A DNA stretch of 64,000 bases from Convolutriloba macropyga (taxonomy: Eukaryota). Below, one piece after another: positions 2,455 to 48,514 of this stretch (position 1 is the stretch's first letter; each line of letters opens with the position of its first letter). The stretch covers positions 15,996,001 through 16,060,000 of the forward strand of contig NC_134468.1 in assembly GCF_964194025.1 (NCBI RefSeq), given 5' to 3'. The notes below the pieces were generated by a model. That model ran no database searches and had not been told where the DNA came from. It worked only from the letters and a program-made list of their open reading frames with translations. A program made the position numbers and the translations under genes.

Positions 2455-4423
2455 GGTGTCCTGTTTTTTCACCCCTATTCTTTTAACCCCCTATATTTTA
2501 ACCCCGATTTTTTAACCCCTATATCATTTAACCCCTCAATTATTTAACCCCTATATTGTTTCACCCCGATTTTAAGCTTCCTATAATTGAGGATAATTAA
2601 GCCTCAATTATTTCTATTTTAATTAATGGAGATTAAAATCGGGGTGAAATGACTGAGGTGTGAACATGCTTTTCACACCTCAATCATTTCACCCCGATTT
2701 TAATCTGTAAATTCATGGATCATAATTGTCAGGGACATAGAGCAAACGACACAATAGTTTAATGCAAAACTATAACAATTAGCGAATTAGTTATCTCAAC
2801 TAATCCTTAATGGGGCAATTAAAAGCAATTGAAAACTGGATTTAACTCAAGAACATTTCTTGTTTTATTGCATTTTGAATTCAGCATGATAACTGCCGAC
2901 TTTGAGTTTACTATTCTTCAAAAAACAAAGAAATATTAGTTGTAGAGGGGCATGAGTTTTATGTTAAAAGATTAAATAAGTTTACCACTGCCTGGAATTG
3001 CTCAAAATATCAAAGTTACAAGTGCCGCGTTTCCGCTTTAACAAAAGATGACCAACTCATTCGCGTGAACGGTGAGCACAATCATAGTGCTTCGATTGGA
3101 AAGCCGGCCACACGAAAAGTTATAAAAGAGATTGAAGCCCTGAGTGAAAACCTAACACCCGCAGCAGCCGTAGCTTCCGCAATTTTACCAGTAACTGACG
3201 TTCTTTCGACCCAGTATGCGTTGCCGTCAAAACCAAATTTAATACAAACCTCGCAGCGCTTAAGAAAGGTTATACAAACAGTGTCAGTTCATGAGCCATC
3301 GGACCGGCATTTTGATATACCCGATAAGTTTCAAGAGTTTTTGCGGTATGACACCGGAAAAGATGACAACGAGCGTATTTTAGTTTTTGGCGATCCCCAT
3401 ATGACATCGGTTCTCGAAAGCTCCAAGTTTTGGCTTGGGGATGGAACGTTTAAACTATCGCCCAAAAACTTCTATCAAATATAACTTTTGACTAATTTAC
3501 AAAAAGACGCTGCGGTGCAAAAATTAAACTTTTTGAATGCCTCATCCGGTCACAAATTCCCAAAGAAGAAGAAGTATGAGAATTTGAAAGGGAAAGTGCA
3601 AAACTTGATGCAAATTTACAGGGATGAAACTGATATCCATTTTTTCAGGTCTATTGCCAGTTTGACTTAGTTGTGTATTTATCGTGTATTTTATTATGTT
3701 TGTTTTTGTGTTAATTTAAATTCGAAATCCATCTTAATATTTTTGAGTTGGCGCCCTCCTTGCGTCCTCACGGAGTTACGTCGAAGCCTCATATCGTGAC
3801 TCATTAGGGAATTTGATCCCGGGCGTTAACCCTATGATGGGACCCCTAATTGGGAACACAGTTTTGCAACATTTAGATATGAAGCTTGCACAGCGTAGCT
3901 GCTAGCAAAAATATCAATCTGGATTTCATTGGAAATTCTGTTAAATACACGGTTGAATTTTGTTTTGAATTGCTAATTTATGCCTGCTCAGAAAGTACGT
4001 TTTAAAATTTAGCTTTCATCCTTTCATTTGAAAAGTACCCGTTTTTCCGTCTTCTAGACTAGGACAGTTTTTGAACTTTTTTGATTCAAATCAAAGTGCA
4101 ACATAAAAGAGGTCAGACTTGTCAAGTGTTCTTTTTCGATCAAAGGCATTGTTCTAAAAAGCAGTCTCGTCATTATTCTTTGATTTGAAACAAACGCAAG
4201 CTGTTCAATGCCGCACTCTTGAAGGTCAGTAGTTTTGTGTTATTTAAGTCCTTTGAACTTTAGCTTTGCTAATTGTTCTTTTGGATGCCGAAATAGATAA
4301 AAGATTTCGGTGTTAAACCGATTTCGGGGTGAATAAATTGCGGGGTTAAATGACTGAGGGGTGATTATATACGGGGTTAAATTATAGGGGGTTAAATAAA
4401 TCGGGGTGAAAAGAAGTAGAATC
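2455..4423 (+). mobile_element. Mutator-like (MULE) DNA transposon, internally deleted, in Ctr intron 3
   Basis: Perfect 9-bp TSD AAGAAAATG at 2446-2454 and 4424-4432; G...C termini; imperfect ~120-bp TIRs built from ttaacccc/ttcacccc subrepeats; transposase remnants inside. Confidence 0.92.
2887..3670 (+). pseudogene. FLYWCH-MULE transposase remnant
   Basis: After a frameshift near 2925: GHEFY...WNCSKYQSYKCRV...GEHNH (FLYWCH finger), then FWLGDGTFKLSPKNFYQI (first catalytic Asp region), joined directly to a C-terminal piece (LTNLQKDAA...FFRSIASLT). Most of the DDE core is missing. Confidence 0.85.
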
Positions 4424-9509: not shown

Positions 9510-10740
9510 TGATTATAAGGCTTCGTAACAGTGAGACAATAAAGAACAAAAACAGTAAAGTTGAAAAATTCGCTTGTAATTATTAAAAACAATTAAATTC
9601 GAAGTAATGAAGACCATTAGAAATCAACTAAAATATCCCATAAGTTTACAAATAACAATGCTTCTATAGAAGGGGAATAACCACTGTCGGGATTACCTTG
9701 TTTATGCTGTTACAAAAAGAACAAAAGATAGACAACAAACAAAAAATCGACTACAACTTGCCAGAAAACGCTTTCGAAGCCGTAAAGCCATTATTTGGCC
9801 CCCAAACTATGTTCGATTGCACCTTCTTCGAACAATGATAATTTACTATGAAACTTGTATTGAAACTTGTAATTTGCCAGAAAAGATATGGGACCAGTCC
9901 ATAATAAGGCTTGGTAACAATTAGACAATAATGAACAAAAACAATAAAATTGAGATATTCGCTTATAATTAACAAAAACAATTAAATTCAAAGTAATGAA
10001 GACCATTAGAAATCAAACAAAATGTCGCATAGGTTTACAATTACTAATGCTTTTATAGAAAGGCATTAACAACTATCGGTATTACAATGTGTATGCTGTT
10101 ACAAAAAGAACAACAAATAGACAACAAACAAAAAATCAATTAAAACTTGCCAGAAAACGCTTTTGAAGCCGTTAAGCCATAATTTAGCCCCAAATTTATG
10201 TTTAATTGCACCTTCTTTGAACAATGATAATGTATTATGTGACCTCTCATTAATAAAAACTAGTTAACATGTAGACAAACTTCTTTAAAGTTGAATTCTT
10301 GAATTCTTCTAATGAATTCTTTAAAAACATATCGTTTTTGACAACTTCGTTTGACAACAATAATGTTAAATTTGGCTTGTAATTAACGAGACCAGGTAAC
10401 AAAAAGACAATAAAAGGAACCAAATTGCGAAATTAATGTTTTCTTTTTATTAAATTTTGGAAAACAATTGTTTTCAAAGTCATGAAAGCCATCAGCTGTA
10501 AGCCTATATCATAACATCGGCTCATCTGTTTTTCCATGAAAACCAAAGAGACGGGGTCCTTGTACAGGAAATTTCATACATCTAAAAAGACAAAGTAAAA
10601 ACGACAGTTAAAAACAAGATTAAAAAGTTGAATTATATTCTTCGAGAAAGTAGTGTCGAAGCCGTTAAAACCTTAATCTAAATCTTTAAAGATTTTGATA
10701 TTATTAATTGTGCTTTATTTTGAAAGTCAATAATGTGAAA
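9510..10740. repeat. Tandem ~390-bp repeat: two good copies plus one decayed copy
   Basis: 9513-9850 matches 9901-10240 (for example gaagaccattagaaatcaa and cttgccagaaaacgcttt); weaker similarity over 10370-10740. Confidence 0.8.
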
Positions 10741-12033
10741 TATGAACTGTCGATAACGTGATAAAGCGACCAATTTCGAAGACATGAGAAATGGGCAAAA
10801 AACTAAAAATTAAAAAAAATTTAAAATCTATAAGTTACAAAGCCAGAAAACCGTAACTGAAAGCGTAAAACCTCATTAAAGATTGAATTTGAATTCAGTA
10901 GAACAAAAAGACATTCTTGCATTTATGACACATTGCTACAGAATGACAAATTAACAAAAAAAATGGGGCAAATTTCTTTAAGCCATTTTTTATTTGTATC
11001 AAATAAAATTTATATCAAATACTTTAAAGTCAAAACGACCATAAGCTTTCAAGTAACAAATTAGATACAATAATTTAGAACTAATTAGGGACCAATTGGA
11101 TTTATCTCTAGTAAGCTTTGATTTGAAAAGTCCTGTTATTTAATTAACATAAAAAAGATCAGTTTTTTTTTTATGAAAACGACCGACTGATTGCAATCCA
11201 AATTATTTTTGGATTGTAACAGTCCAAGATCGGCCCAGAGTTAGCCCTGCAAATGCTGTTTGTCCGTTCAGAAAATCTAACTTTTCGAATGTCATATATA
11301 TAGATATTTTGTTTGTCAAAAAATCAAAAATGAATGTTCAGTTTTTGATAATCAACGAGTAAAGTTAGCAAAAAACGGCAATGTTTTAATTACAGAGCTT
11401 TCTTAACGAAAGTTGAAGTAGAAATTGTCCCCTTTGGAACCTACAAAGATTGTGTTAGTGGTGTTTGGTTGTGCACTTCCTGAAAACTTAATCAAAATTG
11501 ACTGAAGAAACATATTTCGTGCTGTTGTTGATGAAAGAGTCTGGATTTTGAAATGTTTAGCCAGATTTTTTGACAAAGAAATTGAATAGAAATAGCTGAC
11601 AATATTTTTTGTCCCTAAAATAAATTCAACAAGACTTTCTTTAAAAAATTCCAACGAACTTTATCAAAATTTGCTAATTTTTTCTATCAAAATTCCGAAA
11701 AAAGTGAATAAAATCAACGGAATTCACTCTATTATCTCGAAAGTTTAAGCCTCGATAACTCCCTGTAAAAACGAAAATTAAAAAAATCTTTTTAATTCCA
11801 TATTCTTCGCTGGACAAGCTTTTTAATGATATCAGTCTCAACTCTCTACAATGAATATATCGATCGGCCAAAATTGACTGAACAATAAAAACCCATTTGA
11901 GTATATAGTTCCTCCCCCCTCAAGAGGGGTCGGAACAATAATGGTTCATATAGTTAGTTAATTAACAGTTCTTACTTAATTCATTATTAACGTAAAAGTT
12001 AAATAAATAGTTTCATATCATATGTTTTGATCG

Positions 12034-39405: not shown

Positions 39406-40993
39406 TTATCGCCTGCCTCCTGGGGCTGGGTTCAGAAATCTGCCACCCGGAGCGGGGTTCAAAATTCGACCCTTGGTTGGTGGTGGGTTGACGTTGACTG
39501 TTGGCCTGGCCGAGTTCACACTGACTGATGATACGGATGGTGAGGAGTTCAAGGTCGGGTTCATAAACAGGGGAGGGTGCTGTTTGTTTTGCTGGGCGTA
39601 AATTGAGTTTGATCCGTTTGCATTTGTGAGTGATCCAACCACTGCGCTTACATTGTTGCTTTGGTGTGGTTGCTGCTGTTGTTGTTGCTGCTGTATTTGT
39701 TGTTGCTGTTGCTGAACTCGCAGAGCGGCCGCCTGGTTAGCAAGAGCTTGCTTTCGTTCTTCCTCTTTTAGCTTCTGGATCACTTCTTTCTCCTGCTGCA
39801 ATGCTTGCTCCACAGCCAACTTCAGCCGGTTGGTGTGCTCCTTTTTCACGGCCTTCTTGTTGTTGTTGACCAAACACTGTTCGCAGATAATTTTTCCAGA
39901 ATCCGAGTCCCGTTTCCAGGCAGTTGTGAAATCTGTCTGGCATTGAGCGCACTGCAAGGGATCTTTTTTCTTGCCGTCTTTCTTCTTATCGTTGCAAGGT
40001 TTCATAAGCGTGTTGACCAAAACATTCTCCACTGTTTCCTCCAGGCCAGTCAAGTAGAGAAACTCGATCGTGGGCCACACCAGGAAATCCAAGTTGGAAG
40101 GGGGTGGTCGCGGAGGAGGTATTTGAAGAAGAGTCTTTTCAAGCTGCTTCTTCAGGGCAAGCTTGGCTGCCTGTTCACGCTTTGCAGCCGCCGCCGGGTC
40201 CACACGTACTGTGGGCTGCTGTTGTTGCGGCTGAGTGGGAGTACTCCTGTTTTGTGCTGTCGAGTTGTTAGTAGTTCCGGGAGTAACCGAAGGAGGGGGT
40301 CCTCGGAAGAGAGCATTGGGCACAACGTTGGGCGGTAATGCAGCTGAGGTAACTTTAGCGGCACTTGCCAAGTTGCTCTGAAGCTGAGACGCAACTGATC
40401 TGGCAGCAGCTTGTTGAGACTGAGGGTTCGTGTTAACAGTCGGAACTTGAGAGTTGGTTGCAGTTGGAATAACAGTAGTTCGTCTCTGGTTAGCGGCTGC
40501 AGCTGCCAACTGTTGTTGGGCAACCGCTGCCTTGATTTGAGTTGATTGCTGGATCTGTTGCAACAATTGCTGCTGCTGTTGAGCAGCAGTGAGCAGGTTC
40601 TGGTTCGCATGATTCTGCAAGTTGTTCACAAGGGCGTTCACACTTTGCACTGAGGGTACTTGGCCCGTAGCGGTGCTTTGGGTTAGACTAGGAGCAGGAG
40701 TGCTGACAGTGGGCACGTTACTCAGGTTTCCAGTTGCAGTGACAGCAGTGCTATTGCCTGTATTGTTGTTCGTGTTTGAGGTAGCAGCGGAATTAGCAAC
40801 AACAGCAGCACTGGCTGTAGTCTGGGGAGCAGGATTCGACGATGGAGCTGGTTTGGGTGTTTGGGAAGCTTTCAACTTCTTTAACAGAAGCAAGTTAGTT
40901 TCTTCCAGCATTAGCATAGCTCTGATTTTAGCAGCTTCCAGTTTTCTCTGTTCACAATCTTCAGGGTTCTTTTCAACATCGGGTTTGAGATCC
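39406..40993 (-). CDS. GATAD2: GATAD2/p66 NuRD subunit, terminal coding exon. Model: 50597-50365, 50072-49932, 49495-49463, 40993-39406; about 664 aa
   Basis: tttag| phase-2 acceptor. CR1 coiled coil LMLEETNLLLLKKLKASQ; CR2 AAKLALKKQLEKTLLQIPPPRPP...EFLYLTGLEETV; GATA-type finger CAQCQTDFTTAW...ICEQC followed by KKEHTNRLK...ALQQEKE. Confidence 0.95.
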
Positions 40994-41133
40994 CTAAACA
41001 AAGTCAAACGGTTAACTTGATAGCTACATTGAATGGTTTGGTTTTACGTGTCGTAAACAATGTTCCTATCAAAATTTGAAGTGGCAACAACTTTTACATT
41101 TGAAAAGCACATTGATAGTTTAAGAAACAAATC

Positions 41134-41892
41134 TCACATTTCACTCAATAGTGTATCTAAATCTTCCAATTCAAAGTTGGAGATATTTTCGTCCGACTCG
41201 AAGTTGCAGATATTTTCATCCAACTCAAAGTTGAAGATATTTTCGTCCAACTCGAAGTTGCAGATATTTTTGTCCAACTCAAAGTTGGAGATGTTTTTGT
41301 CCAACTCGAAGTTGGAGATATTTTCGTCCAACTCGAAGTTGGAGATATTTTCATCCAACTCGAAGTTGGAGATATTTTCGTCCAACTCGAAATTGCAGAT
41401 ATTTTTGTCTAATTCAAAGTTGCTGATATTTTCGTCCAGCTCAAAGTTGCAGATATTTTTGTTCCTGCTAAGTTTTGCTGCGACCATGCTATCAGAATCC
41501 TCTGATTCGGACAAGCTTCTTTTAGTTGCAACATTTGGTTCAAGACGCTCTTGAGCTTCACTTGAGTCTATAACTTCAGGATTACGAGTTCTTATCAACT
41601 TGCACTGAACAGACATGGCCGTCCATCTATAACTCATATCCCAGCCAGCTTTACTCGCCAATTGCTGTATAATATCACTTAGTGAGTTCTCGCCCATAGG
41701 TTGAATAGCAAACCATTTCGTCTTATCATCTATAAGCCTGAGTGCTCGACAATAAAATTTGGTAGCCCGTTTTGGCAACTTTGATATGTACAGTTTGAGA
41801 ATTTCAAACGGACAGTTTTTGCTTTTAGTTGGATGCAGATAGAGTTTCGTATTTCTTCCATTGAATATGAAGTAAGGAGAACCATCGCTTTC
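41134..41892 (-). CDS. Crypton-derived DUF3504 protein, C-terminal half plus acidic repeat tail
   Basis: The frame is open from 41892: ESDGSPYFIF...NCPFEILKLYISKLP...FYCR...WFAIQPMGENSLSDIIQQLASKAG...WTAMSVQ, then repeats and a stop. Confidence 0.78.
   Translation of the reverse strand, partial: ESDGSPYFIFNGRNTKLYLHPTKSKNCPFEILKLYISKLPKRATKFYCRALRLIDDKTKWFAIQPMGENSLSDIIQQLASKAGWDMSYRWTAMSVQCKLIRTRNPEVIDSSEAQERLEPNVATKRSLSESEDSDSMVAAKLSRNKNICNFELDENISNFELDKNICNFELDENISNFELDENISNFELDENISNFELDKNISNFELDKNICNFELDENIFNFELDENICNFESDENISNFELEDLDTLLSEM
41165..41460. repeat. 27-bp coding minisatellite, about 11 copies
   Basis: Unit tccaactcgaagttggagatattttcg, encoding I(S/C)NFELD(E/K)N on minus. Confidence 0.95.
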
Positions 41893-43600
41893 TTAAGTAA
41901 TGCTTCCTTTTCGCACAAAAAATTAAATTTGAAAAATACTTAAATATTTGAGAATATGCAAATTAAATGAAACTTTTTCAAAGCAATCGGCTCCTTTTCT
42001 AACTAAAAGCGCATTGATAATAAAGCCACAAATACTGGCACAATTACATAGATTTCACTTCACTAATTTGGTGAGTTATAATGCAAATACGCCAGATTTT
42101 TTTTTTCAATTTTAAGGCGGAAATTTGTTCCTTAAATATTTAGTATCTTTATAAATTCGCTTAACCCGTGTTCCCGATAAATGCGCTTGGTTTTCATCAC
42201 ATAGCAAAACATACACAGCAGACTGCCGTAAAATAGCTGGATATCGATGACTTCCATTGTGATCAGAATCCATGCTATTGCCACCATTTTAATTAAAAAC
42301 AGACACAAAATTATGAAACAAACAAGCCAAATTAATCACGGTTATTAACTGGGAGATAGAAGGGGTTAGTGCATTACACCTATCAAACATTAATAAAGTA
42401 AGCAAAAGTCTGAGTATAAAGCTTTAAAGAGCTTTATGGGTATTTTTTGAAGTTTCGTTTTTGATTTTAACATTACATTACGTCGACTCGCTGCTCCGAA
42501 TGCTTCAATAAAAGCGTATAAAGTAGAACGAGAGAAAAAATTATCAATTACAATAACTGCTTCAAACTTCGTTCGAGAGCAAATAAGCATAGTAGGTAAT
42601 ATGCCAAAAAATAACAGCGATAGCCTAGAAACAGTAATTAAAAGAATAGAACCTGATTTTTTTCTCTAAAATGTTTCTCTACAACTTGTAATTTCTTAAA
42701 TTCACATGGGACCAGGAAAAAACACGACCTGATAATTTTTCAAAAACACTGTTTTCCTACTACTTGCGATGTCTTTAATTGGTTTAAACTCATGCACTGT
42801 AAAGCTGCTCTCAAACAAATTTCGATTACTTTAAGATATCCACAATTGAGCTCAAGATCTTTAATTATGTTACCAAAATTCAATTCGAGAGAGAACAGGC
42901 CATTTTGTGAACGAGTAAAGTCAAATGCGACAAAAACCATTGACACAAAGGTCATGAAAAAAAAGTCACTCTAACAAGTGAAAAAAAGAATTCACTCACG
43001 CAAATCATTACAAAGGTTGCTTAATGAATTAACAAAAGCCGATTTGAAGTGCGCGTGACCACCCACATATTGGTGAGAAAATAAAATCATGAGAAGACCA
43101 ATAATAGCTCAGCTCAGCCATCACAACACCAAAAAAATGAGTAACCAAGCTTCTACACAGCCGAAAAGTTGCTAAAAACAGCCACCAGTTACCCTACTGA
43201 ATGACGTTGTGATTGATACAGATCAAAAAATTGATATCATGTATTTGTTTGAAGGGCAAACGTTTTCTAATTTATTCCGCAGTTTCATTAGATTAGATAA
43301 ATATACCCCCACCCAGTCTCTGATTATTAGGATGATAAGTTTAACACTAACACCATTAAGCAATTACTCTATTGGCTTTGTGTTTGACTTCGATTGCAAA
43401 TTTTGTTGAACGAATATTAAACTCTATCTTGTTAAAACTGAGTGAGGTACGCAAAAAATCAAACAAGAAAATTATGACACAGACAAGTAAAAGGAAAAAG
43501 AGAATATCGTTAGAAACACGAAGAGCGCCTAAATGACCATTTAAGTACATATCGGAGACTTTAAAACTAAGATATTTTAAAACAAAGCCCCTTTACCGGA

Positions 43601-44101
43601 GGTGAACAGACAAAACAGTCCCAGACAAAACAGTCCCGGACAAAACAGTCCCAAATAGCAAAATATTCCCAGACAAAACAGTCCCAGACAAAATAGTCCC
43701 AAGAAACCAGACAAAACAGTCCCAGACAAAATAGTCCCAAGGCCATTATTATAGCTCTCACACGTATGATTTAACAAGCGGATAATTTAATCCCATGTTC
43801 GGTTGTGATAGTTTCATATCAAGTCCCACGGGCCGCTGAGGCATGGCCATGGCCATTAAGTATGTTAAAACATACGGGTAATAGCGACTGCTAATTTGTT
43901 GTCGGATTATTGAACGAACATTTCAAAGTACATTGGGTATAATGGCATTAGGTACATTTTATTTGGGACTATTTTGTCTGGGACTGTTTTGTCTGGTTTC
44001 TTGGGACTATTTTGTCTGGGACTGTTTTGTCTGGGAATATTTTGCAATTTGGGACTGTTTTGTCTGGGACTGTTTTGTCTGGGACTGTTTTGTCCGGACA
44101 C
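43601..44101. mobile_element. Foldback/Mutator-type MITE with ~140-bp TIRs made of 15-bp subrepeats
   Basis: Left arm (cagacaaaacagtcc)n, right arm (gggactgttttgtct)n; flanked by tttaccgga and gttaccgga (9-bp TSD with 1 mismatch). Confidence 0.88.
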
Positions 44102-44199
44102 GTTACCGGAAACTCCCTTTCCATTTTTAAAGCAAATATGACAACCGCTTTGTAACAAGTGTCTGGAAAATTAAAAGGAGCAAATACAATGGCTATCAT

Positions 44200-44760
44200 T
44201 TTCGTAGTGACATGAAATACGGTACCGGGAACGCACTTGACACGGAAAAAAATCGCCGCTTTAAAACAAATGTTCAATCAATTCAACATTTCAATCCACT
44301 TTTGGCAAAACCAATATTGAGAATATTTTCACTAGATTCTCGCAAATAATTTTCATCTAAAAAAGATAAATGTCAACCAATTCACATGTCCCTCATTTTC
44401 CAGGCTCCTTTATAGTTTCAACCTTCTATAAAACGTGCTGAAACCCATGCCAGCCCGATTTTTTGTTAGGCCAATTTTGGCTGATAAATATTTCAACAGT
44501 ACTTCACTCATAGTTTTTATATTTAATCGATGGTTTTGACCAATGGTTAATATTTTTGGAGGGATTTGAAACGTGGTACCCCTGCAACGCACGTGACACC
44601 TGGAAAAAATGAATACCCGCTTGAAAAAATGTTCAATCAATTCAACATTTCAATCCACTTTTGTTATAACCAATATTAAGAAAGATTCTCGCAAATTTTC
44701 ACTAGATTCTCGCAATTAATTTCCAGCTAAAAAAGAAAAAATGTCAAATAATTCACAAAT
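44200..44760. repeat. Diverged tandem duplication (~360-bp spacing)
   Basis: aatgttcaatcaattcaacatttcaatccacttttg occurs at ~44269 and ~44629, with colinear flanks. Confidence 0.75.
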
Positions 44761-47059
44761 ATCCCCCATTTTACTTGCCCATTTATTGTTTCCACAATCT
44801 TTGAAACGTGATTAATTTCATGACAGCCCAAATTTTTCGGCCAATTTTGGCTGATCAACGTTCCCCAAGGAGAGCTTCGAGAGATATATTGATGCACAGC
44901 TCTCGCAAAAATGAATTTATACTTGAACATTTCAAAGTTTTCATATCGCGAAGACAGATCGAAACCTTGGCGTTCACAACAGTACTTCTCTCATAGTTTT
45001 TTTATATTTAATCTTCAAAAGGTCAAGAAATAGAAGTTTTTGGAGAATTGTGTCCTCAGTTTTCTGACCTTTTGTTGCTTATACAAGGAAACGAGCAATA
45101 CATGAACAAAGTCGCTAGTTCGGGCCCCTGTTTCACGCAAAAACAAATTAAATGCATCAGTTATTCTAATACATGTGGCTGGAGCAGCGACTTGTTATAG
45201 AGCAGAAATAAGCCGTCTTAATCTCGAGGTATCAATAAAACAGCCCAAAGGTTGAACTGTAGATTTTAGGGCCGAAGCAAGGCTCGATTACGTCATATAT
45301 TAACTGAATTAACCAATTTTGGCCCGCAAAAAGGCTAACGTTTCGTTTTTAGCCTTTTTGCCGCCGATGCTAATTTAACTGACTTATGTTAACTGATGTT
45401 GCGTTGAACATCGTATCGACTCGGCATTATCGATTAGAATTGGAAGCCATTTGTTGAATCTAAACTGCTGCCTATAAATTCTCAATTTTTGGACAAACAT
45501 TTCCGGTATTTCGTTTTAAAAGAGTTCATCGTGTTTAACGGTCATAAGGCTCGAATAAGTATAGGCTTGAATCAGTTTGATAAAATTACTAATAGCAAGC
45601 ACTCTACATCTGCATTAATAAAATTGATTAGTTCTCCAACCACGGAGCAAAAAAAATAAAGAAAAACAATTATTTTCTTATCCAATAGTTAAAATAAGCA
45701 AACAAAGTGTATCTAACAGAGAAGAAACAAGATCAAAATAATTCTAGTGTTACCTTTGAGTATTACCTAAGGTATTATTCATCAGGGAAAAATAATTTTA
45801 GCGACATTTCCAATATTCCATAGTTTAAATGTCATCAATCTAAAACAATTTTTTGAGATTTTTTTTGGTCAAAATAGGATTCTCGTTATTTATCAAAAAA
45901 CAAAATTCTCATTTTGAACTGTCGAGGCTTTTAAAATCTAAGCTACATTTGTCAATTTTTCTCTTAAACACTGACAACCATGGAACAAAATCCAGGCAAC
46001 AGATATTTGTTTGAATTGCATTAGCTGTTGATATTAGCTACTTGGGATAAAGACTTGTACATATTTCAGCTAAACAATTGCCAGGTCTTGAGCGTACAAA
46101 AAATAGGAAAGGATTATTTCCAAACATCATCGATTCTGGCGTAATAGACTGAATCATTAACCACTCGGCTTTCAGGGCCTTGTGAATCATCTTACAATCG
46201 GTTTTGTTTTAGAAGCACTTATTTTCTAAGTCACGCAAAAATCAAGAAGTCAAGCAAGAAAAAGTCACTCGAGAAGTGAAATCAAAAGAATGTTCTAGAA
46301 CAAAAACGTTCAAGCAATTTAAAAAAACGTTGGACAAATTGCTCTCGAACGACAGGTGGGGCAATTTAATTCAGGGGCTGTAGCCTAGATAAATGTTTCT
46401 TTATGGGTGCAAAAATATCACAAAAGTAATGGATTCAAACCCCCCGACCTCCGAAAACCTCCTTTAAGAGCTCCCGACCTCCGGAGTCCTCCAATTAAAA
46501 ATTTTGAGCTAGTGCAAACGCAAATTAATAATCCACCTTGTTGGCTTTAAAAAGCTCTCTGAGCTGCATGATTGGCATCGCTGATAATCAAACTTTGGTG
46601 ACTCACTGGTATTTGGGAGCATTGAACGCATTTCCCCCGTTCATATCCGCTATTGTTATTCAACGAAAAGCATCGCTCTATTACATTCTTTTCAGTCCCG
46701 CTGAACCATTGTAACTTAGAGGAGACCTTTTTCAAAGACTTGTCACCTAACTAGGAGACAATTATCAGGTCACAACAACCACTATTGTCTCGCCGAGTTT
46801 TAAAAGTTCAATAAAAGTCTTGCTAATGAATTAAACAAGAAAGAAACAAAGAGCTCTCAAATATCATTAGGCCCAAAAGAAGCAAAAATGGGTCTTTTCA
46901 TAAATGCCGAGATTTCAAATTTTTGACCCCAACCAGCTTAAATTGGAGGCGCACCATAAATTTGAATTCTTTTACTGGCGGAGTATTTTTAAAGGAATTG
47001 ATAACAGCTACCAAAAATTAGTAGAAGTACTTAGCACTATAATGCGAAAAGGGAAGCAG

Positions 47060-47635
47060 TTCCGTTCCAATTAACTTAATTTTGGATTCGGGACCCCATG
47101 CCAAATCATGATGCTCACGACGGTTTCGGACACCAAAATATTTGCACACTATATAAAAGGCAGTTGCCAGCAACTTCGAAGGATCATCAGCTCCCAATAT
47201 ATTCTGAAACCATAAGTACTGCTCCATTTCTTCCGTTATTATTGCTGACTTAATGCCAGGTCTTCGGAAACCTAACCCACTGAGTTCTTTCACTTTATTT
47301 TGCAACACAGATCGAAATGAGGCGAATTCTCGCCCGTAGAAAATACTTAGTTTGGTGTCTTTGCTTTTGATGTGCATTTGCAGTATCTGTGCAATATGAA
47401 GCAACGTTTCGGAAGAGTAAAGCTGGCCCTTTTTGTCTCTCGTTTCTTGAATGAACATCTCCAAGTAAGGCAACATATTGTCTCGACGAGAATCTATCAA
47501 ATCATCCAACGAAATCAGCTCAAATTGATCGTCTAATTCCCGTTTCTTTTTCATCCACGCAAGCCATTGCAGCTTTACCCATTTCACTTTGCTCAGGGAA
47601 TTCTTGGATAGGAATTTTACTCTCAACGAGCTCAT
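47060..47635 (-). CDS. Crypton-derived DUF3504 (ZMYM/QRICH1/KCTD1-like) protein, N-terminal half; gene or pseudogene
   Basis: KNS..KVKW...W.AW, LEMFIQETRDKKGQLYSSETL, ITEEMEQYLW...ILGADDPSKLL, FGVRNRREHHDL, in the motif order of the DUF3504/Crypton recombinase domain. Confidence 0.8.
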
Positions 47636-48514
47636 TTAGTACTCGAGTCAGAATTCAGTGCTTTCAAGAAGTCAGCGTAAATTAAACTCGCTTCCTGAAA
47701 AGTCACTCCTGGTTCCATTCACGCGCCGAAACAAGATTAATGTTGAGTCATCTAGTTCTTCCAATGATGATATAAAAACGTGCAATAAATGAGAAACTAT
47801 TTCAAGAACATGCGTTTTTAATGCGCATCAACTTAATTGTCTAAATGGTTAACTGTCTTGACTGATTGGCTTAAAATAAAAAAGTAGTCCCTAGCAACAC
47901 TGTTCATCATTCTCACCCACCCCACCCCACCCACCCCCCCCCCCTCCCTGAAACACGCGCAAGCATACTCCACCTTAATTGCTGTACTCGCTTTGACGAA
48001 ACTGGGGGATTCAACATTCCTATTACCCAACTGCTATCCTAAAGAATTTTCTTTGTGCTTAAAAATCTATTTTTCTGCTCGCTAATTTGGGTCAAGATTT
48101 TGAATATCTTGGTTTTCATTTCAGGCAACCCAAGTTCAGTCAATTTTTGCACAAATTACAACAATGACCTCAAAGCTTTTCGCCTAGTCTGCAACATTGC
48201 TGCAACAGCGCCATTAGGGTTTCTATGCCGTAAATTTGTCACTGTTCAGCATTGGTTCATTTAATATTCGTCTGATACAGGAAAGGGAAATGTATCAGAC
48301 TAAAAATGTGCACTGTGTTCGTAACAATCCGTGATGCTTTAGTGTGCCATCAATCGAACGACGTGAAATGATTTACCCGTTCAGCAAAATGTGTGAACAA
48401 TGAAGAAATGATAGTTGGCGATGTGCAATATAACACACTGCGAGCTCAATACTTAACGTGACTTCGATAGTGTTTACTTGGCTTTAATTGAAAGCTTTAG
48501 CCGGCAATTTTTTT

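Follow-up and report, generated by a model that had tools for sequence, protein, structure and literature searches.

Crypton domestication is known mainly from ancient fixed genes (ZMYM, QRICH1, KCTD1) in which the capture steps are no longer visible. The vertebrate DUF3504 genes have all lost both the active-site tyrosine and the second catalytic arginine and yet are conserved (Kojima and Jurka, 2011; PMC3212892). A further case is found in birds, where a Crypton open reading frame (ORF) lies in an ATF7IP intron and where a splice fusion with the host gene has been predicted but is unsupported by mRNA (PMC3212892, section 9). According to the account in PMC13538652, which cites Bianchi et al. 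(2025), Zincore (QRICH1-SEPHS1) is a zinc-finger coregulator complex that has been seen bound to ZFP91 on DNA (PDB 9hjt). Here, we describe a locus in a window of 64,000 nucleotides (nt) from the acoel Convolutriloba macropyga (RefSeq assembly GCF_964194025.1, contig NC_134468.1, positions 15,996,001 to 16,060,000), in which two ORFs with similarity to DUF3504 lie within the GATAD2/p66 gene LOC142335584 and, like this host gene, on the minus strand. These ORFs are probably exons of a functional, catalytically dead Crypton-derived module that acts as an alternative 5' part of GATAD2/p66 and leads to a predicted in-frame fusion protein of 952 amino acids (aa). The process, Crypton domestication, is a known one, while the partner, p66/GATAD2, and the visible route of capture are new.

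The host gene was identified via its terminal exon. The ORF at 39406-40993 is 100% identical to the RefSeq entry "uncharacterized protein LOC142335584 isoform X2", and the named relatives of the encoded protein in the homolog search are p66-alpha/p66-beta (GATAD2) from many animals. The protein p66 is a subunit of the nucleosome remodelling and deacetylase (NuRD) complex; its region CR1 is a coiled coil that binds MBD2/3 and CR2 is a GATA finger. In the host protein, the latter is recognized by PF00320 with 27.9 bits (cutoff 26.8). Isoform X2 is reproduced exactly by joining 50597-50365, 50072-49932 and 40993-39406. Mapping of the annotated protein to the window places both DUF3504 ORFs in the last GATAD2 intron (49931-40994, 8.9 kb), in agreement with the same-strand nesting described in an earlier note that was based on the nucleotide sequence. 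The gene structure is as follows:

50597-50365 and 50072-49932, minus strand: the first two exons of isoform X2 (canonical), an exact match to the mapped annotated protein
47119-47635, minus strand: exon A in isoform X1, coding for a QRICH1-like (core-binding-like) domain at the N-terminus and the start of DUF3504 with FGVR, donor C/GTGAGC
47018-47118, minus strand: tail of ORF1, intronic in the RefSeq model; 47118-47059 encodes the family-conserved REHHDLAWGPESKIKLIGTE, stop codon at 47020-47018
41138-41891, minus strand: exon B of isoform X1, acceptor CTTAAG/AAAGCG, C-terminal part of DUF3504 (AGWDMSYRWTAMSVQ, dead H..R), acidic tail and array of 9-aa repeats
41165-41459, minus strand: 27-bp tandem repeat, 10.9 copies, encoding NFELD(E/K)NI(S/C), the last 295 nt of ORF2
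40994-41137, minus strand: 144-nt intron separating exon B from the terminal exon common to X1 and X2
39406-40993, minus strand: shared GATAD2/p66 terminal exon with putative CR1 coiled coil (weak P66_CC match) and CR2 GATA zinc finger

According to the ORF list and translation, ORF1 (47635-47018, minus strand) comprises 205 aa from its ATG and ORF2 is an open frame of 252 codons (41892-41134, minus strand). ORF2 ends with TGA at 41136-41134, 141 bp ahead of the terminal-exon start at 40993, which confirms the earlier estimate of about 140 bp. As there is no start codon near its beginning, ORF2 needs an upstream exon. For ORF1, a TAA immediately precedes the ATG at 47635, homology to relatives begins at residues 1-9 and the frame is common to both haplotypes, such that the frameshift formerly suspected near 47620 is not needed. 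In Pfam, ORF1 matches QRICH1 (PF25561; 5.8e-8, 33.2 bits, cutoff 30.8) and positions 1-49 of the DUF3504 profile (PF12012; 1.3e-10, 42 bits, cutoff 29.7), and ORF2 matches DUF3504 positions 94-160 (2e-9, 38.1 bits, cutoff 29.7). All three matches exceed the gathering scores, and the two stop-free minus-strand frames (47635-47018 and 41892-41134) do indeed carry the DUF3504 motifs, including both ends of the domain. When the joined protein, isoform X1 (P0241 in our numbering), was searched as a whole, QRICH1, DUF3504, P66_CC and GATA were recovered, with 57.9 bits for DUF3504 (cutoff 29.7) and 29.0 bits for QRICH1 (PF25561), slightly below its cutoff of 30.8. In tblastn searches with seven relatives, only pieces of ORF1 and ORF2 were matched in the whole 64-kb window. 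Over the 27-bp minisatellite the opposite strand is also open (41060-41554); the open frame in this part therefore reflects the repeat itself.

An alignment with relatives that have kept an intact active site, whose motif set reads NHSLRAT...TGHRS...Y, substantiates the active-site assignment made earlier for the first arginine, the T-x-H-S-x-R position and the GH...Y segment. The first catalytic arginine is retained as FGVR, H-S-L-R has turned into M-S-V-Q (within TAMSVQ), corresponding to His to Met and second Arg to Gln, and the GH(R)S...Y segment with the catalytic tyrosine was not found in the window protein. The window copy hence does not have the intact R-H-R-Y tetrad of an active Crypton. 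An AlphaFold model yielded a mean predicted local distance difference test score (pLDDT) of 74, with values of about 90 for residues 10-120. Foldseek ranks QRICH1 from the Zincore complex first (9hjt_H; E 3.8e-6, template modelling score (TM-score) 0.31, 20% identity in the structural alignment), followed by Cre and Tre recombinase (probability 0.98-0.99, TM-score 0.35-0.40). Judged from this model, in which the exon junction is disordered, the module has a tyrosine-recombinase fold.

The two ORFs are joined to p66 in RefSeq isoform X1 (XP_075240226.1, 952 aa), which begins at the ORF1 ATG at 47635 and belongs to a 90% protein cluster represented by isoform X2, a protein without ORF1. With splice junctions taken from the annotation, the protein is reproduced exactly by 47635-47119, 41891-41138 and 40993-39406, and GT-AG is present at all junctions (C/GTGAGC, CTTAAG/A, AT/GTGAGA and TTTGTTTAG/G). 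The exon B donor AT/GTGAGA overlaps the ORF2 stop codon. Exon B ends in phase 2, just as canonical exon 2 does, and both exons are therefore alternative partners of one terminal-exon acceptor. In isoform X1 the dead recombinase module replaces the first 125 p66 residues ahead of CR1 and CR2. We propose that a transcript would start inside the last GATAD2 intron and be translated from the ATG at 47635, be spliced from 47119 to 41891, leave exon B via the donor overlapping the ORF2 stop and continue in frame into the common terminal exon. The predicted product of 952 aa would consist of the QRICH1-like N-terminal domain, a truncated DUF3504, a linker of acidic 9-aa repeats and then CR1 and CR2. 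Enumeration revealed other in-frame splice pairs, in which 47076, 47038 or 47031 are joined to 41891 or 41887.

The fact that ORF2 has its own stop codon speaks for a different arrangement, an independent nested gene in which exons A and B are spliced while the 144-nt intron is retained or the transcript is separate. The product would be a stand-alone dead recombinase of 424 aa ending at TGA 41136-41134, and the fusion in RefSeq would represent a minor form or an artefact of merging. Stand-alone proteins with similar disordered tails are also what the closest paralogs (P0002, P0003, P0005, P0009) encode, and the signs of purifying selection described below fit this arrangement equally well. 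On the other hand, neither AATAAA nor ATTAAA is present between the ORF2 stop and the terminal-exon acceptor (intron 40994-41137), such that the transcript would still enter the p66 exon; in addition, the stop is overlapped by a GTGAGA donor that fits the consensus and shares the phase of canonical exon 2, and the fusion is what RefSeq models. A nested gene thus is a serious alternative that we nevertheless consider unlikely.

A fusion of the reverse kind had been suggested in the earlier note, i.e., a chimera in which GATAD2 exons 1-2 are spliced to the AG at 41889-41888, resulting in a protein that begins with the p66 N-terminus, continues with DUF3504's C-terminal half up to the ORF2 stop and lacks CR1 and CR2. 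This AG exists, and an exon starting at 41887 is in frame with the phase-2 donor; isoform X1, however, uses the AG at 41893-41892 instead. A phase match alone has a one-in-three chance, no model or data point to such a transcript, the context of the AG is poor, the product would contain only half a domain, and ORF1 would be left unused although it shows the same constraint as ORF2. The only annotated fusion runs the opposite way, as XP_075240226.1 keeps CR1 and CR2 and drops the p66 N-terminus. We regard the reverse chimera as highly improbable.

The intron between exons A and B (47118-41892) has an unusual core, which is an insertion bounded by inverted repeats:

41899-47058, no strand assigned: 5.16-kb insertion delimited by inverted repeats of 15/16 nt (TGCTTCCCTTTTCGCA, 47058-47043; TGCGAAAAGGAAGCA, 41913-41899)

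Homology of the window to relatives runs past the model donor to about 47060 (REHHDLAWGPESKIKLIGTE) and restarts at 41889 (SDGSPYFIF). From 47058 the ORF1 frame enters the inserted element, with the homology of individual relatives reaching about 47066-47054, and the break in homology coincides exactly with the boundary inverted repeat. The score of this repeat was reached by 1/5000 shuffles and 5/1541 real window pairs. No target-site duplication flanking 41899-47058 was found by eye, there are no further copies of the insertion elsewhere in the window, and its terminal 16-mer occurs once only. A missing middle exon was not detected either, since tblastn with seven relatives gave no match in the 5.2 kb between the ORFs. 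Most of the interior is single-copy sequence with nested high-copy repeats, high read depth being confined to 42520-42719, 43520-44119 and 46120-46519. The insertion is common to both haplotypes and therefore predates their separation.

In the scenario that we favor, an element bounded by inverted repeats would have inserted into a formerly intronless gene, GTGAG already present in the codons for R-R-E-H would have become the donor, and an AG just past the element would have become the acceptor, at the price of about 20 conserved codons. This loss is consistent with a pLDDT below 50 at residues 170-193, with confident flanks on either side. The same insertion can also be read as the end of the gene, in which case the locus would be a recently disrupted pseudogene or decaying Crypton relic, the halves of an intronless gene would be open merely for lack of time, and isoform X1 would be a predictor artefact. 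All relatives examined are intronless and the break falls on the repeat-bounded insertion, excision of the element preserves the frame but leaves an in-frame TAA at 41895-41893, and no splice pair restores the ancestral junction. Against this stands that canonical splice sites yield an in-frame product. Further evidence comes from copy number and from comparison of the two haplotypes.

Both ORFs are covered by reads as deeply as the unique flanks, indicating a single copy, and tblastn detected no second copy of ORF1 or ORF2 within the window. The closest paralog in the same genome is only about 40% identical to the window protein. Several near-identical genomic copies, as would be expected for an active Crypton, were not seen. 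The second haplotype (L008) was taken from the European Nucleotide Archive (ENA) assembly ERZ25071359 and is 97% identical to the window over 13.5 kb; heterozygosity of the C. macropyga genome is reported as 3.65% (PMC13650328). Comparison of L008 with the window gave the following picture:

Introns: 6,843 aligned nt, 131 single-nucleotide polymorphisms (SNPs; 1.9%), more than 1,000 gap columns
ORF1: 618 aligned nt, 3 SNPs, no other differences
Non-repeat exon B: 432 aligned nt, 1 SNP, no other differences

The coding parts are less divergent than the introns (4 SNPs in 1,050 nt vs. 131 in 6,843; Fisher p 5.7e-5). All four coding SNPs, three in exon A and one in exon B, are synonymous third-position changes, which has a probability of 0.0034 given the intronic share of transitions and of 0.012 for transitions only. 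The only difference in coding length is an in-frame loss of two repeat units in L008 (10.9 vs. 8.9 units). The ORF1 tail (47018-47118) shows 0 differences in 101 nt, which is not significant. Both haplotypes carry the insertion and have thus remained intact from before they separated. For the disrupted pseudogene it can be said that the tracts of low divergence reach beyond the ORFs, and that the probability of about 350 codons staying open over a neutral divergence of about 0.5-1% is estimated at about 0.2-0.4. Yet, both haplotypes keep every codon although the insertion predates their separation, with 4/4 changes synonymous and no indel in the aligned codons. Decay after disruption is accordingly improbable, and we regard the feature as genuine, under selection and not just a decayed Crypton. 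A G-rich (GGGGTGGG)n tract (47914-47943) is located about 280-310 nt upstream of the ATG of ORF1; among the 200-nt bins of the upstream region, the one that contains it is the most polymorphic (11 SNPs, 17 gap columns). The tract might lie near the alternative start site.

Several observations weigh against a functional fusion of the module to p66. Isoform X1 is a computational RefSeq model, and the predicted fusion derives from this model and from splice-site logic. Gene predictors sometimes merge a nested gene and its host. The model intron removes 20 family-conserved codons, and at the junction the pLDDT of residues 170-193 drops below 50. Low haplotype divergence also spans the adjoining intron (46800-47017 and 41893-42999), for which reason reduced divergence alone is not proof, and the synonymous-only pattern comprises just four SNPs. 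Furthermore, P66_CC in the host and in isoform X1 scores 19-20 bits, under the Pfam cutoff of 26.4, although the best named homologs are p66-alpha/p66-beta. All sequencing runs that matched the locus, also when part of the GATAD2 terminal exon was included as a positive control, resembled DNA: the reads were spread evenly over the intron, assembled into contigs of 33-44 kb and showed no splice joints, and the missing RNA hits therefore carry no weight. Poly(A) RNA-seq of C. macropyga exists (specimen txConMacr14, BioProject PRJEB75559; genome note, PMC13650328).

In a scan of 1.8 billion representative proteins we obtained 1,178 matches, none with more than 41% identity. In a maximum-likelihood tree calculated without vertebrate sequences, the window protein falls into a clade of 10 members (support 100/99) that is characterized by an AGWD motif and in which it is sister to P0002 plus P0003 (96/73) with P0008 next (99/93). 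All traced clade members stem from three ENA assemblies. One of these, from C. macropyga, holds L008, P0003 and P0008, and the other two hold the closest GATAD2 relatives, with 63% and 59% identity. P0002, P0003, P0005, P0007, P0008 and P0009 are each encoded by a single uninterrupted ORF. P0007 is the only clade member with the full motif set and a match to Phage_integrase.

P0002 (L001:10001-13157) and P0003 (L002:10001-12676) are orthologous intronless dead DUF3504 genes from two acoel species. Their cores are 67% identical, the dead AHSLD motif is common to both, and both are located directly upstream of an adh_short gene (75% aa identity). Because synteny is conserved, they are host genes rather than mobile copies. 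Their dN is 0.45 with dS saturated, and a homology search with P0003 returned only P0002 and P0003. The adh_short neighbor was not found in the 64-kb window.

In P0008 (L010:5001-8121, ERZ25071359, C. macropyga), a single ORF of 350 aa encodes QRICH1, the whole of DUF3504 and two C2H2 fingers, and a 519-aa ORF with multiple C2H2 fingers follows 500 nt downstream on the same strand. As far as its sequence tells, P0008 is a second instance in this genome of a member of the dead-recombinase clade joined to a DNA-binding protein, and since it is fused to C2H2 fingers, fusion of the module to DNA-binding proteins does happen in the C. macropyga genome.

The corresponding GATAD2 locus of another acoel (L003) contains no DUF3504 between an exon-1-like segment (3818-4201) and the terminal exon (9926-11443). 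The orthologous intron is thus devoid of the domain, which implies that only on the Convolutriloba side has the module been placed in GATAD2, the dead module as such being older. The lineage-specific domestication postulated before therefore applies to the placement in GATAD2 but not to the dead module itself, which is part of an older acoel clade of intronless, mostly dead paralogs. The general idea of a catalytically dead domesticated Crypton-type recombinase joined in one lineage to a NuRD subunit holds, in view of its single copy, of haplotype constraint and of its absence from the other acoel's intron. Going further, the clade may represent a private acoel group of immobilised, mostly dead Crypton recombinases that have time and again become the N-terminal module of a protein binding DNA or chromatin, in C. 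macropyga once as an alternative first-exon pair of p66 and once in the C2H2 fusion. The p66 isoform would then provide a NuRD complex with an ex-transposase targeting domain of its own, saved after a transposon hit by conversion of coding sequence into an intron. For this wider scenario we see the chances as evenly balanced.

The inserted element has itself been a target for insertion:

43593-44102, no strand assigned: nested element resembling a miniature inverted-repeat transposable element (MITE), with inverted arms of 139 nt that are 96% complementary and a joint (43592 to 44103) at which about 8 letters are shared

It is absent from haplotype L008 and from the contigs of all four DNA runs (X1-X4), which, together with the joint, suggests a recent insertion with a putative 8-bp target duplication. 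Its arms consist of 15-nt subrepeats, and its family is at very high copy, the depth rising to about 345,000 from a baseline near 35. Arms related to these were seen in an assembly from another acoel (L001:13446-13802) and at a C. macropyga paralog locus (L002:12848-12913). A further insertion polymorphism in the same intron is represented by about 430 extra bases in the other haplotype (L008:8799-9233), near window position ~42545 at the edge of the high-copy repeat 42520-42719. Inside the 5.16-kb element there is also a direct duplication of about 300 nt with 76% identity (44187-44488 and 44541-44858).

The GATAD2 locus looks like a young capture in progress, as the exon pair is separable, has its own start codon, is phase-matched to the host terminal exon and has no counterpart in the corresponding intron of another acoel. 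It also exemplifies how an insertion into coding sequence can be tolerated via intron formation. If the fusion is real, it adds a new example of a chromatin regulator that has taken up the protein of a mobile element and ties a transposon-derived fold for recognition of DNA or zinc fingers directly to a histone deacetylase and remodelling complex. Isoforms X1 and X2 would in this case offer a tractable experimental contrast for the function of the DUF3504 domain. By analogy, the dead recombinase may serve as an adaptor binding DNA or zinc-finger proteins and may provide one NuRD/p66 isoform with different targeting.

When compared with the domesticated Crypton genes (QRICH1, ZMYM2/3/4, WOC, KCTD1 and KIAA1958; PMC3212892), the module shares the loss of the tyrosine, the second arginine and the histidine, the single-copy state and conservation, and the fusion to modules of transcription or chromatin regulators. 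It differs in that it falls into a separate, acoel-restricted clade in our tree, that Pfam detects no MYM (zf-FCS) fingers, CARD or BTB domain in isoform X1, and that the partner is p66/GATAD2, with the module as an alternative 5' exon pair instead of a fixed part of the gene. An assignment as WOC/ZMYM/QRICH1 ortholog was rejected for lack of MYM (zf-FCS) fingers or CARD in Pfam and in view of the acoel-only clade in the tree calculated without vertebrate sequences. With active Cryptons the module has in common the two-domain tyrosine-recombinase architecture, and clade member P0007 even keeps the full motif set; the window copy, in contrast, is without H, second R and Y, is single-copy, and the only terminal structure seen belongs to the inserted element and not to the module. 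The ATF7IP ORF of birds is a parallel in terms of position, being a Crypton-type recombinase ORF in the intron of a chromatin regulator that is conserved between species. The bird ORF, however, keeps its catalytic residues, whereas the ORF described here is dead, has been split by a secondary insertion and is fused to its host in a RefSeq model. Finally, with the Crypton-derived fold of QRICH1 as top Foldseek match, Zincore provides a precedent for a dead recombinase fold that serves zinc-finger proteins on DNA as an adaptor; with a TM-score of only 0.31, a comparable adaptor role of the acoel module is proposed by analogy.

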